Shown here: piece by piece, positions 23,072 through 62,839 of the stretch
Numbering within the stretch: position 1 is the first letter of the stretch
Layout: every line of letters starts with the position of its first letter
Assembly: GCA_001179505.1 (NCBI GenBank)
Contig: CDMY01000158.1
Span: 117,272 to 181,271, forward strand
Direction: 5' to 3'
Source: Vitrella brassicaformis CCMP3155
Taxonomy: Eukaryota; Protista; Chromerida
DNA: 64,000 nucleotides
Notes under the pieces: generated by a model
Seen by the model: the letters and a program-made list of their open reading frames with translations, nothing else
Databases searched by the model: none
What the model was told of the DNA's origin: nothing
Program-made: the position numbers and the translations under genes

Positions 23072-23670
23072 CTATGCTGGCTGCCTCTGCTGCACTCCCT
23101 GTGTCTCCCATTTGTGTTCTGCCTGCTCAGCGCCCCCCTTGGTTTGCGCTGTGACAGCCTCCTGTGGTGGCGGGGGAGGGAGGGACTTGGCTGAGCTGGG
23201 CATGGACGACGGCAACAAAGCGGGCATTGACTGAAGAATCGACTGGGCGAGAGGCGGGATGACGTTCTGCAGCCGATCGGCCCAGCTGACGCCGTTCTCG
23301 ATGGCAACTCGGAGGCTGAGCTGGTGAATGGTGTGGGGCTGCTCGGTGGTGAGGAAGGGCTCGCAGATCCGCTCCATGTACTCGTGAAGGAGCTCGCCCA
23401 TCAGCACAGAAAGGCCCTCCAGCCCCAGGGCAAAGAGGTTGGCCGCCTCACTCACCCACATCTTGGCCTGGCCCCCCTCCTCAACGTACAGGCATGTCCC
23501 TCGTCTTGCCCTCCAGCTCGTCGACCTTTTCCTCATCAGTGAGGCCGCACATGGTGTCCCAGCCATCCCGGGTCACCATGGCTGCCCCGCTCGCCTGCTC
23601 CGCCCTCCCCTTGGCCCGCTGGTCTGCCCATGTCTTGGTCAGCATGACGGAGAACTCGGGCGTGTACACG
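23072..23670 (-). pseudogene. Partial tandem duplicate of the pseudokinase C-lobe, frameshifted
   Basis: YTPEFSVMLTKTWADQRA...DGWDTMCGLTDEEKVDELEGK, then a frame change to AKMWVSEAANLFALGLEGLSVLMGELL...LRVAIENGVSWADRL; homologous to 24400-24850. Confidence 0.8.
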
Positions 23671-23714
23671 GCATACGTACAGCTGTTGGTTTTGATGTCG
23701 CAGTCCGCGGACTC

Positions 23715-25912
23715 TCACATCTGACGGCCGGACTCTGAAAGAGAAGACACCACACACAAAATGACAGCAGCCGACACATACACATGACGTTCATCCCCCA
23801 CGTGTGTTTGTGAGTATTGGTCTTACCATGCCCTCCATCCTCACCTGCCAGCTCCAGCCCTCTAAACAGGCGCTCCTCAGTCCCCTCCTCGTCCACCTGC
23901 CTCTCCGCCTCTCTCTCTCCCGCCTCCTCCCTCCCGGCCAGGCCGTCCGATGTGCCGGGCGACTCTCCCTCATCGGCTGTCTTGTTGGCGGTGTCGGCGC
24001 CCTCCTCTGCCGGCGACGCGTCTTCTCGCCTGACGTCCTTGACCAGCGGCTCCCCCACCATCCCCACACCCTCGACAACAAGCCCGTTGGTCTCGCCATG
24101 GCCTGACACATCACCGGCATCCTCGGTGGCTTGGTTGGGGTCGGCGAGAGGCGATGGGATGGATGCTCGTGTGGTGGTGCCCCAGTGGGCATCGAGAATG
24201 CGTTCCTCCATCTGCATCAGCCGCCCGTCCATGGTGACGAGGCCCTGGGGCAGCCGCTCCATCCGCTCCCACGGCATGGGCCTCACGCAGTCCACCACCA
24301 GCTCCCGCATCATCACTCCCACCTCTCTCGCCCACTCCATGCATGGCTCTGTCCGCAGGAAGAGCGATGGAGGCGTCGGTGCTGTTGACGCGCTCGACTG
24401 GGCGGGAGGTGGGAGGACCTTTGGCAGCCGATCGGCCCAGCTGAGGCCGTTCTCGATGGCCACTCGGAGGCGCAGCTGGTGGATGGTGCTGGGCTGCTCG
24501 GTGGTCTGGAAGGACTCGCGAATGCGCTCCATGTACTCCTGGAGTACCTCCCCCATCAGCACAGAAAGGGCCTCCAGCCCCACGCCGAAGATGATGGCCG
24601 CCTCACCCACCCACATCTTGGCCTGGTCTGGTAGGTAGAGCCCCCTGTCCTGCAGCAGACGCAGCTGCTCCTCCAGCTTGCCCTCCAGCCGGTCCATCTC
24701 CCCCTCATCGGTGATGCCGCAGCCGCTCTCCCACCCATCGACCGACACGAAGTCGACCTCACTGTCCGCCTCCTGCTCGTGCCTCGTGGCGCGCTGCCCG
24801 GCCCATCCCTTGGCCAGCATCAGGGCGAACTCAGGTGCGTGGTGGTGTGGGGTGATGGTCCACAGGTTCTCGTCCTCTGTCTGGTCCTCCTCGCTGACGC
24901 TGGCCAAGACGGGCAGCCGACCGATGGTGTTGGGCAGCTGCTGGCTGGTCGGCTTGGCAGTGAGGGCGTGGCCCAGGTCGATCATGCGCAGCTCCTCGCA
25001 TGCGATGCTGCTGTTGCTGTTGGTGACGGTGGGGGCCGGCTCGCGGATGAGCAGCTCCTGCGGGTCTGCCGTGAGCCTGGCTGCCGGCTCAACCAGCCTG
25101 CCGTCCAGAGGGCCGACGACCGGTGGGATGCGCTGGAGCATGGGCAGCAGTGCATCGCTGGACATGTTGTCCTCGGCGAGGACGCCCAGCAGAATGGCCG
25201 CATTATGCAGCCGCACCATGCCCCGCAGCGCCCGCACCTGGATCAGGGCGACCTCCTTGAGCAGGGCCTGGATGTTGGGGCGATGCAGGTCGGCGCTCCT
25301 GCTGACGGCCGTGGTGATGGCAGCGCATTTGGCAGCGATGTCCTTGAAGTCGCCATACTTAGCTGAGTGAAATGCCAAACACACATACAGCACGGTCAGG
25401 GATGAGGGTGTTTCTGATCGATTGTTCAGTGCGAGTGTGCAGTGTGTGAGTGGCCTCGTCTTACTCATATCCAGCTTGGGCATCCGAATGGCGAACACCC
25501 TCTGCATGGCCGCGACCTCCTGCTGTGTGATGGGGACGTTGTTGGCCAGCGGCGACTTGAACATGGCTGTGGCGCCGTCGACGTCCGTGTGTGCGGCGAG
25601 GACGGGCAGGAAGGGCCTGTGGCCCTCAGGGATGCCGAGCTCCTCACACTTGGCCGTCACCGCCTCCATCACGCGCCTCTCCTGGCAAAGCGCCAGCCAC
25701 TTGAACTCCTCCACCTCCGACAGGCACGCGTGTTCTTCGATGCGCACTGTCTTCCAGATGCTGTCGAGGGCATCCGTGGTGGTGAGGATGCTGGCGTTGT
25801 TGCCGCCACCGTGCTCGTTGATGAATCCGGACGGCGGGTTGGGCAGTGCGGCGCCGAACACGGGCGTCTGGTCCTCCTCGTTGACGCGCACCTCCTTCAA
25901 CACGTGCAACAT
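23715..25912 (-). CDS. Protein-kinase-fold pseudokinase, family copy 1 (3 exons)
   Basis: GGGNNASI (G-loop), IWKTV (beta3 K), QERRVM (alphaC E), LRGMVRLHNAAILLGVLAEDNM (HRD replaced by LGV, N kept), MIDLGHA (DFG as DLG), TPHHHAPEF, KMWVG, CVRPMPWERM; introns after LDM and at 23735-23826. Confidence 0.8.
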
Positions 25913-37200: not shown

Positions 37201-40200
37201 CCCTCAGGACTCGTTTGTCATCCATTCATTTTGTGCTCTGTATGTGTGTGTTCAGGTGCACCGGCGGCGTGACGCCTTGCTGCAGGACAAGAGGGACCGC
37301 TATGGCCGAGCGCCTGATCGCGAGGAGGATGTCAGGAGGGACATCAGGGTGCTCGAGAAGGAGGTCGAGCGGCTCAAAACGTCCAAACAGGAGCTACAGG
37401 TGACAAAGAAGCAATGACGCAATGGATGGACGGCTCGTGTATTTCTCTTCCTCCTTGTTGGTGTGGTGCTGCAGGCGGAGTTTGACCGCCTCGTAACCAA
37501 TCAGCAGCACGTGACGGAGCGCATCGACCACGACAAGATCAACTTCTTCACAGCCCCCACAAACGCCTCCCTCGACGCATCCGCACAGGAGGGTGCGTGT
37601 GCGTACCTGCACGCCAGCCCCCACTACCTGCACCCGGCCGTGTGTGTGGTGAAGTACCTGCTGGCCCCGCGGATCAAGTGCTCCACCGGCGACGCCATGT
37701 TTGGGTGGGAGTTCATGACGCGGCTGGTGGAGGCCCGTACGCCAAACCTCTACTTCTTCCCATTGGTGGAGGCCTGTGTCAAGACCATGCCCCCACTCAT
37801 CAGGTGAGCAGAGGGCGGAGGCAACCCACCAGCCAACACACGTCACGCTCTGTGTGTGTGTGTGGTTCAGGGGCATGACGGACAGCGAGGCGTGGTCGTG
37901 TGGTTCGTTGTTCAACAAGATCTTCACCACACTCACCGAATGGCAAAGGGCACCCAACAAATACGTCAAGGTAAGTAAATGAGTCCCATCTGGTCACTCG
38001 AGCACTTATCCATCTTCGCCCAGGAGTTTGACGAGAACCCGTGTTTGAGCATCTTCCAAGCCCAGCTGGTGGCCAGGTCGACCGACCCACCACCCGCGAG
38101 TGAAGCACCAGGCCCGGCAACCGAGAGCGCCACCCCCACCCTCGCCCCCCAGCCGCTGGGCGAGAAGCTACTCGTGCTGCTGATGCACTTTGAGGAAGAG
38201 ATCTTCACATTCTTCTTCACAAGTGAGGGATGGATGCTGTGACCGCAACACCCGCCGACACACACACACACACACACACACACAACACTCTGCGTGTATC
38301 TGCAGTGGTTCGTCAAGCCCTGGATGGGTCTGATGGCCCACTGGAGGCTGCGGCCGATGGCGACAAGGGCGACGACGACTCCAAGATGGATGAGGAGGAG
38401 GCAGCGGCTGAGAAGGAGCGGCAGCAGGAGCGGGTGAAGAGGAACAAGGAGAATGCCTACCAGGAAGTCAAGCGGGGGCTGGCCTTCCTCGTCCAGGCCG
38501 CACCGGTAGGCAACACACACCGGACTGAATGAATGACACACAGAAGGAAGGCAACAGGTCCTCATGTCCTGTGTGTCGCCGCTTCCAGGCCTTCCCCTGC
38601 ACGCAGTTCGTGGCCACTGAGCTCCGGAAGCTGATGGACCAACTCGGGGCGCATGCCGCAAAAGACGTCAGCCAACAGAACCAGACATCAACCCATGCGT
38701 GTGGGTCATTCATCTGTGGTGTGTTTGGCATCCATCTTTGAATCAGAGAATGGATTGGCCGGATGTCAGGTCAAATGCCAACGGCTACGCCTACCAAAAG
38801 CTCAGGTGAGCCGCAGGACCAGGAAGCATGACCATGTGAGGCAATTGGATGGATGAGATCCTGGGTGTGGTGTGTGTCATGGTGTGTCTTTCATCCTTGC
38901 AGGCACGATGCCCCTCGGCTGGATGTGGGCGACCATGCAGCCCATCAGTCTCTAAAGGCGTGGCTCAAGGCGCAGGAGCGAGCCCCACCACCGGAGAGCT
39001 CACCCAAGCAGCCCTCCCCTGCTGCATCGCCTCCGCGTCCCCTGCCGCCCCCGCCACCCAAGAATCTCCTTGACGTCGGCCCGCCACCACGGACACAGCC
39101 GAGTGCTGCTCCTGCTCAACGGCCACCGACACAGCAGACGCTTCCGCCCTCTCGCCCTGCGCCGGCGCCAGCCAAACCCCTTGCTGCTTCTGTGGCCGAC
39201 AGCGGTGCACCTTCTCGCGCCCCCCAAGCACCGCGCGCAGCGGCCAATGCGCTGGCGGCCCCCGCGGCCTCGTCTGAGCCGAAGGCCAAGTCCCCTCCGC
39301 CCAAGGCTACTGCACCGCCGACCAAGGCACCAGCTGGAGCTGCTGCTGCCGCCGCACCGACAGTGAGACCGCCATCTACACAACCACCACAGGAGAAACA
39401 ACCACAGCAGCAGCAAGAGCCGTCTGCACGTCCCAAGGCCGCCTCAGTGCCCTCACCCAAGCCACCACCGAGCAAGTCCCCTCCGCCGTCAGGTCCCTCC
39501 GCTGCTGCGGCGGCTGCCCCCAAGGCAGCGTCCACTTCGCCGCGGCCTCCCTCGACGTCACCAAAGACGGGCGGCATTGTTCTGGGGCCCAAGGCGACAT
39601 CCAAGTCGCCCCCCGCCCGCAGCCCCACATCGACACCGACACCCCAGCTGAGACCCAAGCCGACATCCACACCCCCCAAGCAGCCGACTGGTCAGCCACC
39701 GTCGTCCCCGCCTGTGAAGCCGTCAGCTGCGGCCAAACCAGCCGCAGATCTCAAGGCCGAGGAGCACCTGGCGCAGAAGAAGGAGGCCGTTCGCGAGCAG
39801 ATGGCCTCGTCGAGAGCCGCCCTCTCCCCCAGACCGTCATCAGCCAAGGAGACGCCATCAGCTGCTGCCAAGCCGGGCGCCAAGGCAGATGGTGTGTCCA
39901 AGGCGCCGCGTGCTGCTTCGCCTGTTCCGTCCGGCGGCACAGGGAGAGCGCCTGGTGCACGGCGAGATGGGCCATCCGCCCCACCGCCGTCATCTGCTGG
40001 ACCGGCCTCACAGGCTGGACCCGATCGCGCGGCAAAGGGGGCCGCCTCTCCACCGTCAAGCCAGAACGGCCGCGTCAAGGAGTCCCAAGAGGGGCCAAGG
40101 AAAGGGGACGCCGCTGCCGCTGCATCAGCTGCCTCTAGCCAGCATGAGAAGTCTCCTGTCCGCAGTGACCGAGGCAGTGAGCGAGGGAGTGACCGCAGGG

Positions 40201-40640
40201 CCACACCAAAGGCAACTGCACCTGGAGGCCGACCGCGTAATGCGCTGAATTCGCTCGACTCGCCCGCGCCAGCACCTGGAGGCAGCAGCCGGCTGGCCAG
40301 TGGGGGCGGTGGAGCGCCGAACGGGCCATCATCATCGCGTCAGTCGGAGAGGCGGAAGGAGGGTCCGCCGCCCCCGGAGCCCGTCTCGACACGATCGATG
40401 AGGAGCGATGCGTACGGGCCGAGGGGCGAGGGAGCTAGAGGCGACGGGCACTATACACGGGGGTCGGTGACGCAGGGATTATCGTCTGGCGACTGGCGTG
40501 ATAGCAGGGGCGACGACTGGCGGGGTGACAGAGGGGGCTATCGCGAGAAGGACAGTCGTGAGAGGCGGCAGCAGCACAGCCACTACCCCCAGCAGCACGA
40601 GAAGCCCAGGAGCTTCTATGAAACACGGCGGAGATCCTGA
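31228..40640 (+). CDS. THOC2: THO complex subunit 2 (Tho2), multi-exon, with a long P/A/S/K-rich last exon
   Basis: YSLFRESTEGYARII, RRYAVY, CNPFPVF...PNIIPHLVETTK, QEVLKYMGGI...LNAEQIRAQAGGPLL, YLTFWRLDWSDMLVPKDVYD, APRIKCSTGDAMF, MTDSEAWSCG match the THOC2 motif order; contains gap 32650-32949. Confidence 0.92.
32650..32949. other. Assembly gap (300 N) inside a THOC2 intron region
   Basis: Run of N. Confidence 1.
39501..40375 (+). repeat. Source copy of a ~870-bp segmental duplication (part of the THOC2 last exon)
   Basis: Near-identical to 61601-62463 from gctgctgcggcggctgcccccaag to gagggtccgccgccccc. Confidence 0.97.
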
Positions 40641-48314: not shown

Positions 48315-50092
48315 ATGGCGGTGGAGGCGGTGTTTAAAGAGCTGCCGGTGCAGGCATCGCTGCCCGTAATAGGAGCACTGCCGGCGAGTCCCCCGTCCGG
48401 CCTCCTCACCCAGCACGAGGGCGGTAGCCACGCCCGCATCTTCACCACCGCCGACGCGCCGCACCTCCTCTGGAAGACAGTGCCGCTGGAGGACATGGAG
48501 GGTATGTCTGACGAGGAGGAGGAGAAGTGGAGGGTGCTACGGCAGGAGAGGAGGGTCATGCTCGCTGTCGAGAAGCGCAGCAACAACCTGGGCATCCCTC
48601 CTGACAGACGCCCCTTCCTTCCCCTCCTCGCACACCACACCGACCTCCGCAGCCCCGCGGCCATGTTCGCCTCGCCATCGCCCGCCAACGCCCCCGTCAC
48701 GCCAGAGGAGGCCGCCGCCATGTCGAGGGTTTTCGCCATACAGATGCCAAAACTCAATATGAGTAAGATAATTCACACTGAATCAGGGCATTTCATTAGT
48801 TCTTCATTTCCTGTCTGTGCCTTTGTGTGGGTGTGTGTGTGGGTTTGTGTGATTGGCGTCACTCAGGTGTGTATGGTGACCTGAGGAAGGTCTTGCCTTG
48901 GTGTGCGGCGATTTGTGGGGCCATCCGCAGCAGCCAGCTCCACCAGCCGCACACACAGGCGCTGCTCAAGGACCTGGCCCTCCACCAGCCGCACACACAG
49001 GCGCTGCTCAAGGACCTGGCCCTCCTTCTGCTGCGTGGGCTGGTGAGGCTACACAACGCCGCCATCCTGCTCGAAATCCTGGCGGAGGACAACATGTCCT
49101 CGGACGCCCTCGTGCCCATCCTCGACCGCATCCCTGCGGTGCGGGTCGACAGGAGCACGGGGGAAGTGTCCCTGCTGGGCGAGCTCAAGGACCTGCTCAT
49201 CCGCCAGCCAGCCCCCATCATCACAGACGACAGCAGCAGCATCGCATGCGACGAGCGCATGATAGACCTCGGCCACTGCCTGCGCCACAAGCCGACCACC
49301 CACCCGCCCCCCACCAGCATCGGACGGCTGCCGATCCTCGCCAGCATCGCCAAGGAGGACCAGGAGTACGACCAGATGTGGACCATCACCCCACACCACC
49401 ATGCTCCCGAGTTCTCGGTGATGCTGGCCAAGCAGTGGGCCGGTCAGCGGGCCAAGAGGCGCGAGCAGGAGGCGAGCGGCGTTGAGGAGGTCTACAGGGA
49501 TGGCTGGGATGTCGGGTGTGGGCTAACCGACGACGGCGAGGTCGATCAAGTCGAGGCCAGGGCGGGCCAGCTGCTGGGCGCCATGCAGGAGAGGGGGCTG
49601 GACGTGGAGGAGCCGCAGGAAGACGGGACGGTGAAGGCCAAGATGTGGATAGGGGAGGCGGCCATCGTGGGCGGCCTGGGGCTGGAGACGCTCTCCGTGC
49701 TGGTCGGCGAGCTGTTGCACGACCACATGGAGAGGCTGTCGCCGCCGCCCCGCGGAGCCGACAAGGACTGCCACCGGAGGCGCCTTTCAATACTCAACGG
49801 CCTCTTCTGGGAGGACACCCTAACCCGCGCCCTGCCGGTGGTGTCTGAGGAGAGCCGCTCGCTCTTCCAGCGGCCAGAGCCATGCATGCAGTGGGCGAGG
49901 GACGTGGGGAGCAAGCTGCGCGAGCTGGTGGTGGATAGCTTGAGGCCCATGCCGTGGGAGCGCATGGAGCGGCTGCCCAAGGGCCTCATCGACATGGATG
50001 CCCGGCTGCATGAGATGGAGGAGATGGTGCTGGCCGCTCACTGGGGGGCCACGAGTCCCTCCTTTCCTGCACCCATCACCGACGCGAATTGA
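48315..50092 (+). CDS. Pseudokinase family copy 2 (intron 48763-48866; 3' end altered by an early stop)
   Basis: EGGSHARI, LWKTV, QERRVM, LRGLVRLHNAAILLEILAEDNM, MIDLGHC, TPHHHAPEF, AKMWIG, LRPMPWERM. Confidence 0.8.
48938..49021 (+). repeat. Exact 42-bp in-frame tandem duplication (LHQPHTQALLKDLA x2)
   Basis: ctccaccagccgcacacacaggcgctgctcaaggacctggcc twice. Confidence 0.97.
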
Positions 50093-50269
50093 GTAAGCAC
50101 CCCCCCCAGGAGCCAGACGCCGCCACACCACACACACCGCCCCCGCACCACCACCTGCAGCAGCAGACGGTGAGTGAGTGAGTGAGTGAGAGGGGAGAGA
50201 GAGAGGGAGGCTGATCTGGTGTGTGAGTGTGTGTGTGTGTGTGTGTGTGCAGCAAGTGGGTTCGGAGGA

Positions 50270-57404: not shown

Positions 57405-58509
57405 CAGCAAGCTGACCAATTGAAGCTGACGCCCCCAACGTGGCGTCCCTCCGTCCCCCCGCACACATCCACGGCCCGTGCGCGCCGGTGCCTCTGGACC
57501 GGCAACGGCAGCTGGCCGAGCATCAGCGGCCGACGGGCATCCCCGCCGCTTTGGACGAGGTGACGGCCCTGCTGCTGATTTGGAAGTGGCGGGCCAAGAA
57601 CAGTACTATGGGTAGCATGACGGCGGCCGAGCAGCAGGCCGTGTGGCGGCAGTGGCGAGGGCGGAGAACCGCACGAGGGCGGCAGGCAACGAGCGGCTGA
57701 TTAAGTGGGGGGGCGGGGAAGAACGACTGTGGATGGATGAGCAGACAGCCGTCAACGGCATCGGCACGGTGATCCTGCGCTTCTTGCGTGGGTACACAAT
57801 CGTGCCCATGATCGTGCCGGAGGCAGGCCGATCGATGAGGCCTCAAGGTCCAAGCGCTGGTCAAAGAGGCAGCTTTGATCCTGACGGGTGAAGGGGATGA
57901 TGGCGTATCGGTGCCTACATTTTATATTTGTTCGGCTTATGAGGACCATTTGCCGCAGTAGGCAGCTGAAGGCCGCCAGAGTGCAGGTGTGTGTATCGAA
58001 GAGGAACACACTTATGGCATTATGACGTCTCATTGCTCATGGTCTTCCTCATGTCTCTCTGCTGTTCTTCAGGCAGGAGGTCGACAGCGATATGTGTGTG
58101 TTCAGGATGGTAGTGTGTCGGATGAGCTGGTGTTGGACTCGCGGATGTGGGACGAGCTGGCGTAGCAGTTCGTTCCCTTCATCCTCAACAAAAATGTCAT
58201 CATCGGCAAAGCAAACCGGCTCAAGGTCAGCAAGCACATCAGCACCAGCACCAGCACCAATACCAACACGACACCACACCGCCGCCTCCCCTGCCGCTCT
58301 TTCACGTTTGTCGGTGGTGCAGGTGGGCGCCATGGGGGTGCTCGCCGTGCTCTGGCGACTGGCGCGCAAGGCGTACGAGGCCTTGGGGGCAGACAAGTAC
58401 ACCGTCATGCACCAGAAGCTACACGGGCTGCAGGATACCCTCTGCGCACTAGAGAGTGAGCCGATGACCATCCTCTGATCACCAAGTACATGTGCTTGAA
58501 ATGTGTGGT

Positions 58510-59130
58510 GGTCGAGTTGGTGTCTGTCGATGGCTGGGAGAGCGGCTGCGGCATCACCGATGACAGAGAGATGGCGCGACTGGAGGCCAAGCTGGAGGAG
58601 CAGCTGCGCCATTTGCAGGAGAGGGATCGACGGAGTTTGCCGGCCGATTGCTGCCTACATTTTATATCAGCGGACTCATCAGGAATTTTCCCGCACCACA
58701 TTCGTTCGCATCTGAGGATGGAGGACATGGTAAGACCAATACTCACAAACACACGTGGGGGATGAACGTCATGTGTATGTGTCGGCTGCTGTCATGTTGT
58801 GTGTGGTCTGGTCTTGTGTGGTGTGATGTCTTCTCTTTCAGTCCGAGTGGCCATCGAGAACAGCCTAAGCTGGGCCGATCGGCTGCCGAAGGTCCTCCCA
58901 CCTCCCGCCCAGTCGAGCCCGTCAGCAGCACCGAAGCCTCCTTCGCTGTTTCAGCGGACGGAGCCGTGTATGGAGTGGGCGAGAGAGGTGGGAGTGAATA
59001 TGCGGGAGCTGGTGCTGGACTGGGTGAGGCACATGTGAGAGAAGCGGATGAAGCGGCTGTCGCACGGCCTCATCGCCATGGACGAGCAACTGATGCAGAT
59101 GCAGCGCATAGTCAATACCCACTGGGTCCA
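58510..59130 (+). pseudogene. Scrambled mosaic of pseudokinase copy 1 fragments
   Basis: 58510-58625 matches about 24650-24770; 58713-58841 matches about 23735-23850 (intron); 58842-59130 matches about 24150-24470; stop after VRHM. Confidence 0.85.
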
Positions 59131-59583
59131 CCAAACCAGCGAGCGGCCAACAAGTAGGCAGACATGGAGACAAACAGGAAAGATTATCACTTTTATGTCT
59201 CGCATTTGCTCGTGTCCATTTTAGGTCATCCACCTGCCCACATTCTATATCTGATGCCGGAGGAGTAGGTCAAATGCGACCATTCCATAAAGTATGCTGT
59301 ACGAAACACGACTTGGCCATTATGGGGATATCATCGACATGCTGCTTACACGTTACATTTTCAATCTGTGTGCCACCTCTGCTTCCTGCTGGGTATGCCC
59401 TCAGACAGCACTCAACTCACGAGCAGCGCATTTCCATTGATCGACTGATCAAATTAACATTCCATGCTCATTTCTGACATCCACTGGCCAGTCAGAACAA
59501 CATCAGACGCCTTCCTGCGGCTTTTTTCCATGATCGCGAGTCGGTCGCGAGCTTTTAAGCTTGCGTGTTGAGAGAAGAGAAGG

Positions 59584-61484
59584 ATGGCTCAAGAGAGCGA
59601 GGTGCCCGAGCAAATGCCGCGGGGCATGGTGCTGAAGGAGGTCCAGGTGTAGCAGGCGCTGCCGGTGGTCGGAGGGAAGCCAGCGAGCCCGCCGTCGGGC
59701 CTCATCACCCGACACAGCGGCGGCAGCAATGCCACCATCATCACGACCGCCGACGCCCCTGACCACCTGTGGAAAGCCGTCTTGCTCGAGGAGCAGACGG
59801 CTATGTCAGATGAGGAGGAGGAGAAATGGATGGCGCTGCGCCAGGAGAAGAAGGTGATGCAGGCCATCCAGGCACGGTGCGAGGAGCTGGGCATCCCCCA
59901 CAACCAGAGGCCGTTCCTGCCGCTGCTCGCCCACCACGCCCACCCCAGCCGCCCCACCGGCCTCTTCATCTCGACCGTGCCTGGCAGCGTGGAGGTCACG
60001 CAGGAGGAGGCGGAGGCCATGCAGAGGATCTTCGCCATTAAGATGCCCCGGCTGGACATGAGTAAGGCCACTCACACACTGCGCACTCGCACTGCACAAT
60101 CCATCAGAAACACCCTCACCCGTGTGTGTTTGGCATCATTCACTCAGGTAAGTACGGGGACTTCAGCGACATCCTGCCCAAGTGCGCCGCCATCTGCGCC
60201 GCTGTCGACAGCCGCCATGTGCATCTTCCGCAGGTCCAGGCTCTGCTGAAGGAGGTGGCCGTCATCCTCATCCGTGTCCTTCGGGGCATGGTGAGGCTGC
60301 ACAACGCCGCCATCCTGCTCAGGGCGCTGGCCAACGACAACGTGTCGACGGACGGCCTCATCCCCATCATGCATCGCATCCCCCCGCTCCACATCGAGCC
60401 ACTGTCGGGCGAGCCGCGTGTGTCGACAGCTGACCTAAAGGAGCTGCAGGAGCGTCAGCCAGCCCCCGTCGTCACCGACAGCAACAGCAGCATTGCATGC
60501 GGGGCCCTGCGGATGATCGACCTCGGTCATGTCCTGACGCCCAAGGCCACCAGCCACCCGCCGCCCACCACAATCGGCAGGCTGCCCATTTTGGCGTGCG
60601 TGAGGAAGGAGGACCAAGGGGAGGACGAGAATATGTGGACTACGACGCCATACCATCATGCCCCAGAGTTCTCCCTCATGTATGCCAAGGAGTGGGCGGA
60701 CCAGCGAGCGGCCAGAAGGGCACAGGAGGCGAGCGGGGAAGCCATGGTCGACATGGACGGCTGGGAGGTCGGCTGTGGCATGACGGACGAGGCGGAGATC
60801 GACACGCTCGAGGGCAGGATGAGGGAGCTGCTGGATGAGATGGGGGAGAGGGGCCTGTATGTGGAGGAGGGCGGCACACAGGGCGAGACGCGCAAGCCCA
60901 AGATGTGGCTAGGGGAGGCGGCCATCCTGTTCGGCCTGGGCGTCGAAGGGCTGTCGGTGCTGCTGGGTGAGCTGATGCACGACTACATGGAGCGGACGTT
61001 CCAAATCCACGCCCCCGAGCAGCCACAGACCGGCAGGCAACTCCGCTTGCGGCTGGCCATCGAGAGCACCCTCAGGTGGGCGGAGATGCTGCCCCTTGTC
61101 CTGCCCGAGGAGCCCGACCCAAGCGCAGCCAAAGGGTCGACGCCGCCATCGCTCTTCCTGCGGCCAGAACCATGCATGCAGTGGGCGAGGGACGTGGGGA
61201 TGAAGTTGCGGGAGCTGGTTGTGGATAGCTTGAGGCCCATGCCATGGGAGCGCATGGAGCGGCTGCCCAGAGGCCTCATCGACATGGACGAGCGGCTGCG
61301 TGAGATGGAGATAATGGTGCTGGCCGCTCACTGGGGCGTCACGAGTCCCCCCATTCCCGCACCCATCACCGACACACCCATTGTCTTCCAGGCCACCCCC
61401 GACAGCCCGATCGCATCCCCCCAGCAGCCAGACGCCGCCACACCACACACACCGCTCCCGCACCACCACCTGCAGCAGCAGACG
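59584..61484 (+). CDS. Pseudokinase family copy 3 (in-frame TAG at 59650-59652; may be a pseudogene or use a downstream start)
   Basis: SGGSNATI, LWKAV, QEKKVM, LRGMVRLHNAAILLRALANDNV, MIDLGHV, TPYHHAPEF, KMWLG, LRPMPWERM; same intron position as copies 1 and 2; phase-0 donor at 61485. Confidence 0.7.
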
Positions 61485-61564
61485 GTGAGTGAGTGAGAGG
61501 GGAGAGAGGAGAGGTGAAAGAAGGGAGGCTGATCTGGTGTGTGTGTGTGTGTGCTCCCTGCAAG

Positions 61565-62839
61565 GCACCGGAGACCAAACCGGCACCCGAGATCAAAGGT
61601 GCTGCTGCGGCGGCTGCCCCCAAGGCAGCGTCCACTTCGCCGCAGCCTCCCTCGACGTCACCAAAGACGGGCGGCATTGTTCTGGGGCCCAAGGCGACAT
61701 CCAAGTCGCCCCCCGCCCGCAGCCCCACATCGACACCGACACCCCAGCTGAGACCCAAGCCGGCATCCACACCCCCCAAGCAGCCGACTGGTCAGCCACC
61801 GTCGTCCCCGCCTGTGAAGCCGTCAGCTGCGGCCAAACCAGCCGCAGATCTCAAGGCCGAGAAGCACCTGGCGCAGAAGAAGGAGGCCGTCCGCGAGCAG
61901 ATGGCCTCGTCGAGAGCCGCCCTCTCCCCCAGACCGTCATCAGCCAAGGAGACACCATCAGCTGCTGCCAAGCCGGGCACCAAGGCAGATGGAGTCGCCA
62001 AGGCGCCGCGTGCCGCTTCGCCCGTTCCGTCCGGTGGCACAGGGAGAGCGCCTGCTGCACGGCGGGATGGGCCGTCCGCCCCACAGCCGTCATCTGCTGG
62101 ACCATCCTCACAGCCAGGACCCGATCGCGCGGCAAAGGGGGCCGCCTCTCCACCGTCAAGCCAGAACGGCCGCGTCAAGGAGTCCCAAGAGGGGCCAAGG
62201 AAAGGGGACGCCGCTGCCGCTGCGTCAGCTGCCTCGAGCCACCATGGGAAGTCTCCTGTCCGCAGTGAGCGAGGGAGTGACCGCAGGGCCACACCAAAGG
62301 CAACTGCACCTGGAAGGGGACCGCGTAATGCGGTGAATTCGCTCGACTCGCCCGCGCCAGCACCTGAAGGCAGCAGCCGGCTGGCCAGTGGGGGCGGTGG
62401 AGCGCCGAACGGGCCATCATCATCGCGTCAGTCGGAGAGGCGGAAGGAGGGTCCGCCGCCCCCTGCGCTCTTCTTCCCACCGACCCCTCATCCCATGACG
62501 GCCCTGCAGCCACCCGCACACGCACCCCCGCCACATCTCCCCCACCCCCAGAGCCCCGCCACCTACGATTACAGCTACTCGCCCACCCTCCCATTCCAGC
62601 CCGACACGGCCATCCTGATCAAGGGGCCACCGCCCGACACACCTCAAGCCGTCCAAGGAGGCTGGATGGAGGGCTGGATATGGAATGGGGTGCGGCGAGA
62701 GTGCGAGTATTGGGAATACGACCGACGGGAGGGGATGTGGGAAGTGAGGAGTGAATCGCAGGACCTGAAGATGATCAGGAAGAGGCAGTGGAGGGAGGAA
62801 CTCGAGTCGTGGATAGCCCTGTTCCGCTGCCGCCACTAG
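61565..62839 (+). CDS. Putative chimeric terminal exon: THOC2-derived low-complexity segment plus a novel W-rich tail, in frame with pseudokinase copy 3
   Basis: Candidate acceptor tgcaag|GCA at 61564/61565 is in the frame of the open 61493-62839 ORF. Confidence 0.5.
   Translation, partial: APETKPAPEIKGAAAAAAPKAASTSPQPPSTSPKTGGIVLGPKATSKSPPARSPTSTPTPQLRPKPASTPPKQPTGQPPSSPPVKPSAAAKPAADLKAEKHLAQKKEAVREQMASSRAALSPRPSSAKETPSAAAKPGTKADGVAKAPRAASPVPSGGTGRAPAARRDGPSAPQPSSAGPSSQPGPDRAAKGAASPPSSQNGRVKESQEGPRKGDAAAAASAASSHHGKSPVRSERGSDRRATPKATAPGRGPRNAVNSLDSPAPAPEGSSRLASGGGGAPNGPSSSRQSERRKEGPPPPALFFPPTPHPMTALQPPAHAPPPHLPHPQSPATYDYSYSPTLPFQPDTAILIKGPPPDTPQAVQGGWMEGWIWNGVRRECEYWEYDRREGMWEVRSESQDLKMIRKRQWREELESWIALFRCRH
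61601..62463 (+). repeat. Duplicated THOC2 last-exon segment
   Basis: Matches 39501-40375 with scattered substitutions and one 12-bp deletion (gaccgaggcagt); the frame is preserved. Confidence 0.97.

Follow-up and report, generated by a model that had tools for sequence, protein, structure and literature searches.

The nuclear DNA of Vitrella brassicaformis CCMP3155, a free-living photosynthetic alveolate, encodes a family of proteins that probably constitute a very diverged protein-kinase-like domain: Vitrella-specific pseudokinase paralogues with a core of about 550 residues and without the catalytic Asp. Three of the genes lie in a stretch of 64,000 nucleotides (contig C158:117272-181271 of the 72.7 Mb assembly), which we refer to as the window and whose positions are used below unless another contig is named. 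Copy 1 is found on the minus strand, where its core extends from 25912 to about 24134 and its open reading frame (ORF) stays open as far as 23639; copies 2 (48315-50092) and 3 (59584-61487) are found on the plus strand. An initial annotation of this DNA had described them as an undescribed, expanded family of pseudokinases. The ORFs, their translations and tblastn place all three paralogues where it had located them, and with protein identities of 50-62% and a ratio of nonsynonymous to synonymous substitution rates (dN/dS, ω) below 1, their resemblance goes beyond chance.

Alveolates are known to possess kinase-like families that are lineage-specific and very diverged, and the present proteins would likewise seem to form a new, species-restricted family within the well-known pseudokinase kind, with no sign of a new mechanism or of a link to a known pathway. 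Their value lies mainly in annotation. Profile models, on which surveys of kinomes and pseudokinomes rest, do not detect this family, which implies that very diverged kinase-like domains can escape detection in protist genomes. Furthermore, its intact, diverged and nonsense-mutated copies and its chimeras offer a small natural series for studying how the fold tolerates the loss of the catalytic loop and long insertions.

Evidence for a kinase-like fold

All searches and structure predictions were run on single exons and on database gene models; we did not join exons ourselves. The public gene models are P0001 for copy 1, P0004 for copy 2, P0003 for copy 3, P0005 for a paralogue on contig C300 and P0002 for a locus on contig C579. 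Residue numbers follow P0004 throughout.

Four measures point to a kinase-like fold, which we regard as very likely. By its ESM Atlas embedding, P0004 falls among Pkinase clusters with a score of 0.97 and 208 of 256 features in common, and its ten best named hits all belong to the kinase clan. P0005, which is 37% identical to P0004, also reaches 0.97 to Pkinase clusters (207-208 of 256 features across both proteins). The Atlas model of P0004, with a predicted template modelling score (pTM) of 0.60, could be aligned over 293 residues to a bacterial Pkinase cluster with a template modelling (TM) score of 0.61, and to the pseudokinase STK40 with a TM-score of 0.57 (both target-normalised).

For profile comparisons with hhalign, we built three kinase profiles from Vitrella's own kinase exons and 73 bacterial Hanks-type kinases; two of them comprised Vitrella kinases only (17 and 10, respectively), and the third 90 kinases from Vitrella and bacteria. 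Against these, the family profile including P0005 obtained scores of 35-40 (P 2e-4 to 8e-4), compared with 14-17.5 (P 0.18-0.59) in reversed-profile controls, and the alignments are collinear from the glycine loop through subdomain XI. Lastly, in an unfiltered hmmsearch with our own kinase hidden Markov model (HMM), P0005 was matched with E=1.5e-4 (7.4 bits), a value equalled by none of 300 shuffled sequences, and P0001 and P0004 with E values of about 0.02-0.03 (about 0 bits), equalled by 5-7 of 300.

Conserved and replaced residues

Every motif listed in the initial annotation can be read in the translations of the three copies. In copy 1 (minus strand), they comprise the glycine loop HGGGNNASI (25813-25787), IWKTV with the β3 Lys (25759-25745), QERRVM with the αC Glu (25684-25667), the predicted catalytic loop RLHNAAILLGVLAEDN (25213-25166), which contains neither the Asp nor the Lys of its kinase counterpart, RMIDLGH at the DFG position (24988-24968), TPHHHAPEF with the APE motif (24853-24827), KMWVGEAA (24619-24596) and RPMPWER (24283-24263), whose second Arg corresponds to the Arg of subdomain XI.

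The mapping of the catalytic loop is the same in every hhalign alignment: the kinase stretch LH..gI-HRDLKPEN pairs with RLHNAAIL-L(G/E/R)(V/I/A/M/L)LA-x-DN. Leu thus stands in place of the HRD His, the residue at the Arg position varies, the catalytic Asp has become V, I, A, M or L in all members, the Lys of HRDLK is replaced by Ala, and the Asn is kept, so that HRDLKxxN reads L-x-(V/I/A/M/L)-L-A-x-D-N in the family consensus. The loss of the HRD Asp, as described in the initial annotation, was checked for a correct alignment that would place an Asp at the catalytic position; the residue found there is hydrophobic in all alignments, and no Asp lies within two positions of that column. Given a kinase fold, the absence of the HRD Asp from every member places the family within the sequence-based definition of pseudokinases as kinase folds in which one or more of three residues, VAIK Lys, HRD Asp and DFG Asp, are missing (PMC13519141).

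Only 26% of the aligned columns are invariant in the four paralogues, and among these are K54, E78, N225, D283, E331 and R515, that is, the β3 Lys, the αC Glu, the catalytic-loop Asn, the DFG Asp, the APE Glu and the subdomain XI Arg. All 10 N-lobe sequences compared have K54, and the four full paralogues all have E78; the two residues align to the Lys and Glu columns of kinases and would form the β3 Lys-αC Glu pair. N225 and D283 align to the Asn and the DFG Asp that serve as Mg ligands in kinases, and E331 (of APE) and R515 (the Arg of MPxxR) likewise align to their kinase counterparts.

The distances between these landmarks are unusual. In copy 1, the Asn and the DLG Asp are 63 residues apart, DLG and APE 49, and APE and KMW 71, compared to canonical values of about 13, 24 and 12 (PKA numbering). 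These spacings bear out the inserts that had been proposed, and three long insertions may be read from the alignment, with lengths of about 50 residues (catalytic loop to DFG), about 25 (activation segment) and 20-60 (after APE).

Less clear is the position of helix αF. The initial annotation had taken KMWxG for the DxW motif with its Asp lost; the motif itself is present, but its assignment is ambiguous, as hhalign instead pairs the kinase DxWxxG with DGW(E/D)xGCG (24739-24716 in copy 1). The latter candidate would keep the Asp, but is followed by charged sequence. The former, KMW-GEAAI..G.GLE.LSVL.GE, starts the most hydrophobic helix of the protein (Kyte-Doolittle hydropathy over 19 residues, KD19 = 1.9) and therefore appears better suited to the buried αF; the second most hydrophobic helix is the one leading into the catalytic loop. 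On these grounds, we lean towards KMWxGEAA as αF, as originally assigned.

The proteins have no hydrophobic N-terminus, in agreement with the initial annotation, which had reported no signal peptide, and their strongly hydrophobic 19-residue segments are all internal helices. With neither a signal peptide nor a convincing membrane helix, they are presumably soluble and may be cytosolic, as the initial annotation had proposed. Taken as a kinase-like domain, the family would have kept the residues that bind ATP-Mg and link the lobes, namely the glycine loop, the β3 Lys, the αC Glu, the Asn, the DFG Asp, and the APE Glu with its subdomain XI Arg, and would have replaced both phosphotransfer residues of the catalytic loop, the HRD Asp by V/I/A/M/L and the HRDLK Lys by Ala. 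Its members probably still bind nucleotide, and would act non-catalytically as scaffolds, allosteric partners or decoys, in the manner of characterised pseudokinases (PMC13519141).

Competing explanations

A number of observations weigh against the pseudokinase reading. A Pfam scan of ORFs, exons and public gene models to E=10 gave no family match for any member, none reaches the gathering threshold of the Pfam Pkinase model PF00069, and neither phmmer nor a family-profile hmmsearch found anything in the PDB. The hhalign probabilities are just 24-48%. With the three window copies alone, hhalign gave only weak P values of 0.015-0.12, and a default profile comparison with these copies aligned the catalytic loop only (P=0.17); the profile signal hence needs the diverged paralogue P0005. 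The Atlas model of P0004 is of only middling confidence (predicted local distance difference test, pLDDT, 0.54). Moreover, AlphaFold2 models, from whose alignments we kept out true kinases since these would have made a kinase-fold result circular, were unusable both for full-length P0004 with a 7-row family alignment (pLDDT 36.8, pTM 0.24) and for the N-lobe in exon 1 with 10 rows (pLDDT 39.7). We attribute this failure to the shallowness of the family alignments; a Foldseek search of the PDB with the full-length model, which returned nothing below E=1, is accordingly uninformative. The argument from invariant residues is partly circular, as profile alignment prefers conserved columns. Finally, the 90% clusters of the intact copies contain no transcriptome member, and the sole transcript-derived match is to the ORF of a fragment. 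The kinase reading of the initial annotation is thus backed by the Atlas embedding and model, by hhalign with its controls and by the unfiltered hmmsearch, but not by a confident bilobed AlphaFold model.

Some of these observations would fit an orphan family of some other fold, whose kinase-like motifs are chance likenesses picked by eye and echoed by weak profile matches. The missing Pfam and PDB matches, the failure of AlphaFold, hhalign probabilities below 50% and the non-significant default run can all be read in this way, and according to the Atlas documentation a score of 0.95 is attained by about 1 in 100 shuffled proteins, and ten concordant hits by a third of them. We nevertheless consider this unlikely. 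The embedding, the TM-scores of the ESMFold model, hhalign and hmmsearch are partly independent and agree on a kinase, the motifs follow the canonical order over some 500 residues, and the reversed and shuffled controls all score lower. Likewise, the diverged P0005 gives the same answer and is in fact the more kinase-like.

If the fold is indeed kinase-like, the proteins might still be enzymes with a non-canonical chemistry, for instance AMPylases of the SelO type that bind ATP in a flipped orientation, or enzymes with a relocated base. In favour of this, the family has lost its phosphotransfer residues but none of its ATP-Mg ligands, with Lys, Glu, Asn and Asp all invariant. Two further residues could provide such a base: D224, the invariant Asp before the Asn, and H286, the His after DLG. 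SelO (PF02696) shares several features with the family, namely a kinase-like scaffold in which the HRD Asp is missing but the Lys, the Asn and a DFG-type Asp are present, and a local (H/L)GVL..DNMS loop; the copy 1 loop LGVLAEDNMS is locally similar to HGVLNTDNMS of Vitrella SelO. Co-options of this kind exist, SelO being an AMPylase with HGV in place of HRD (PMC13519141). The likeness remains local, however. Within the family, the G-V pair of the loop gives way to E-I, R-A, G-M and G-L in other members, and 63 residues lie between the Asn and the DFG-type Asp, compared to 9 in Vitrella SelO. In addition, ordinary kinases, too, commonly have DN instead of EN, and the Atlas neighbours of the family are canonical Pkinase families rather than SelO. 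Membership in SelO itself was rejected: no member matches PF02696, the Pfam model matches only two other loci in the genome (on contigs C938 and C738), and hhalign against the SelO pieces covers 29 columns with P=0.065. An active enzyme of either type thus appears improbable, and we give marginally less credence still to the specific proposal of a species-restricted kinase-fold enzyme that would combine a retained ATP-Mg site with another chemistry or base. If true, it would represent a newly evolved catalytic use of the kinase fold.

Relation to known kinases and pseudokinases

The closest known systems for the presumed pseudokinase are, first of all, eukaryotic protein kinase domains (PF00069), with which it shares the motif order GxGxxAxI, β3 Lys, αC Glu, LH...xxN, D(L/M)G, APE and subdomain XI Arg. 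It differs from them by its lack of a Pfam model score, the replacement of the HRD Asp and the HRDLK Lys, the three long insertions, and an αF in which the DxW Asp is displaced or lost.

Among characterised pseudokinases, ILK (with RHA in place of HRD) and JAK2 JH2 and HER3 (both with HRN) have a degenerate catalytic loop and bind nucleotide (PMC13519141). The Vitrella family resembles them in the loss of the catalytic Asp and the retention of the VAIK-type Lys and the DFG-type Asp. Unlike these proteins, it is confined to a single species and has no recognisable partner domains, and no sequence relationship to them can be detected.

Apicomplexans possess clustered, polymorphic pseudokinase families of the Toxoplasma ROP5/ROPK type, which are lineage-specific, lack the catalytic Asp and undergo turnover. 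In these respects, the Vitrella proteins are similar: a lineage-specific alveolate kinase-like family without the catalytic Asp, with clustered copies and turnover. It is, however, much smaller, and as Vitrella is a free-living alga, a role as host effector does not apply. We found neither a hydrophobic N-terminus nor, among 1.84 billion protein representatives, a relative outside Vitrella that would assign the family to the ROPK type.

Species restriction and genome census

At the sensitivity of HMMER, the family is restricted to Vitrella brassicaformis. A word-indexed search of 5.8 billion clusters returned four proteins, all from Vitrella, and an exhaustive HMMER search of the 1.84 billion representatives with a three-sequence profile returned seven, all from Vitrella brassicaformis; no other chromerid, apicomplexan or dinoflagellate protein is among the hits of either search. 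The claim that the family is lineage-specific therefore stands. A further search with exon 2 of the C300 gene returned nothing, not even the known paralogues, probably because of low-complexity words, and is uninformative. We found no paper describing the family, its public protein records are unnamed and, as mentioned, no Pfam model matches it, so that 'undescribed' is likewise appropriate.

For a census of the genome, we relied on six-frame searches of the assembly. The window contains the three copies and two clusters of fragments (23201-23711 and 58073-59143), and further fragments are found on the same contig at about 103.4-104.2 kb. Contig C579 (21224-28622) carries two tandem copies, which are internally deleted or rearranged, and an N-terminal fragment, all of which are merged in the scrambled 1100-residue model P0002. 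This model opens with C-lobe motifs ahead of the N-lobe and could be mistaken for a circular permutation. Contig C300 carries one intact paralogue, P0005. Overall, we count about three apparently intact genes (copies 1 and 2 and the gene on C300), alongside one copy interrupted by a nonsense codon, a tandem pair of degraded copies and some fragments, and to call the family 'expanded' was an overstatement.

Gene structure of the copies

Copy 1 consists of an exon that encodes the predicted N-lobe, with HGGGNNASI, the β3 WK and the αC QE (25465..25912, minus strand; residues 1-149 of P0001 according to ORF and translation), a GT..AG intron of 102 nucleotides in phase 1 (25363..25464), across which P0001 reads DM-T-KYGDF, and a second exon. 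The core of the latter (24134..25362), delimited by translation and hhalign, encodes the predicted C-lobe with RLHNAAILLGVLAEDN, RMIDLGH, TPHHHAPEF, DGWESGCG, KMWVGEAA and RPMPWER; it is followed in the same ORF by an acidic, low-complexity C-terminal tail (23639..24133), close to whose end the public model splices. The ORF of copy 1 seems continuous because its intron is in frame and free of stop codons.

Copy 2, on the plus strand, has the same organisation, with the predicted N-lobe in exon 1 (48315..48762; residues 1-149 of P0004), a GT..AG intron of 104 nucleotides in phase 1 (48763..48866), and exon 2 including the stop codon (48867..50092; translation and tblastn). A (TG)n microsatellite lies within this intron (48824-48851), and similar CA/TG-rich tracts are found downstream of copies 2 and 3. 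Copy 3, also on the plus strand, comprises exon 1 (59584..60061), a GT..AG intron of 86 nucleotides in phase 1 (60062..60147), and exon 2 (60148..61487), which the public model joins to a duplicated THOC2-type tail exon (61565-62836).

The shared intron position reported for the three copies could be verified to the base: the (D/N)M codons are directly followed by the donor A|GTAAG, and CTCAG| serves as the acceptor. The C300 paralogue has a GTGAGT donor at the same place, which makes the intron ancestral to the family. Its public model, P0005, uses a GTATGC donor 24 nucleotides upstream of this better GTGAGT donor (L008 2860-2900, contig C300), and probably lacks eight homologous codons (SMPEIDL-) on account of the weaker donor.

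An in-frame TAG in exon 1 of copy 3 (59650-59652), 5' of the glycine loop and at a position where copy 2 has Gln, was overlooked in the initial annotation. As a consequence of this codon, P0003 starts downstream (59803, MSDEEEE) and does not include the glycine loop and the β3 Lys. It may be either a real nonsense mutation or a sequencing error.

Selection, turnover and expression

The family evolves through local birth and death, and its intact copies are under moderate purifying selection. Exon-by-exon codon alignments of the three window copies put dN/dS at 0.37-0.44 (bootstrap upper bounds no higher than 0.54) and dS at about 0.75-0.8, where dS is a rough Nei-Gojobori estimate given the G+C content at third codon positions (GC3) of about 0.86. 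Comparisons with the C300 paralogue gave an ω of 0.5-0.75 at a dS of about 1 or more. An ω of about 0.4 at a dS of about 0.75 indicates that the intact copies diverged long ago and were moderately constrained as coding sequence. The 'fast turnover' initially ascribed to the family thus applies to its fragments and chimeras, but not to the intact copies.

Signs of recent turnover are clear around the copies. Adjoining copy 1 downstream is a partial tandem duplicate of its APE-to-αF region (23201..23711, minus strand; tblastn), with 87% nucleotide identity (direct repeat D2). A 164-residue ORF in this duplicate (23072-23566, minus strand) is 100% identical to the MMETSP transcriptome peptide P0010, which indicates transcription of either this truncated piece itself or the 3' end of copy 1. 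Upstream of copy 3 lie degraded family fragments on the plus strand (58073..59143; tblastn), whose closest relative is copy 1, in inverted orientation and with 86-93% nucleotide identity (repeats I1, I5 and I6). Some of the pieces near the window copies are 94-97% identical at the protein level to the array on contig C579. Copy 2 contains a perfect 42-nucleotide in-frame tandem duplication (48938-49025, 2.1 copies, 100% identity), which repeats the 14 residues LHQPHTQALLKDLA just before the helix leading into the catalytic loop. At their 3' ends, copies 2 and 3 are 90-98% identical in DNA over the last 300 nucleotides (49859-50182 and 61149-61497), compared to 71-79% elsewhere, which suggests gene conversion between them. 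The stop codon of copy 2 is found at 50090, and the sequence past it still matches the coding sequence of copy 3 up to the same GTGAGT donor.

That all this instead reflects the decay of a once-functional kinase-like gene, whose relics are mostly or entirely non-functional and drifting towards loss, is among the least probable of the explanations considered here. The nonsense codon in copy 3, the fresh duplication in copy 2, the many fragments, rearranged copies and chimeric gene models, the intact copies without a matching transcriptome peptide and an ω of 0.4, high for a kinase domain, would agree with it. On the other hand, ω lies clearly under 1 across a long period of divergence, the reading frames of copies 1 and 2 and of the C300 paralogue remain open for over 550 codons, their conserved intron retains good splice sites, and the key structural residues are invariant.

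A transposon-borne or viral origin of the copies was also considered and rejected, as their similarity stops at the coding regions, terminal repeats are absent and the neighbours in the window are ordinary nuclear genes. The latter include a WD40 protein and a THOC2 homologue at about 31-40.6 kb. The last part (39501-40386) of this THOC2-type gene (ORF 38853-40640) is duplicated at 61601-62474, downstream of copy 3, with 96-99% nucleotide identity, and the public model splices the duplicate onto copy 3, giving rise to the chimeric, 956-residue P0003.

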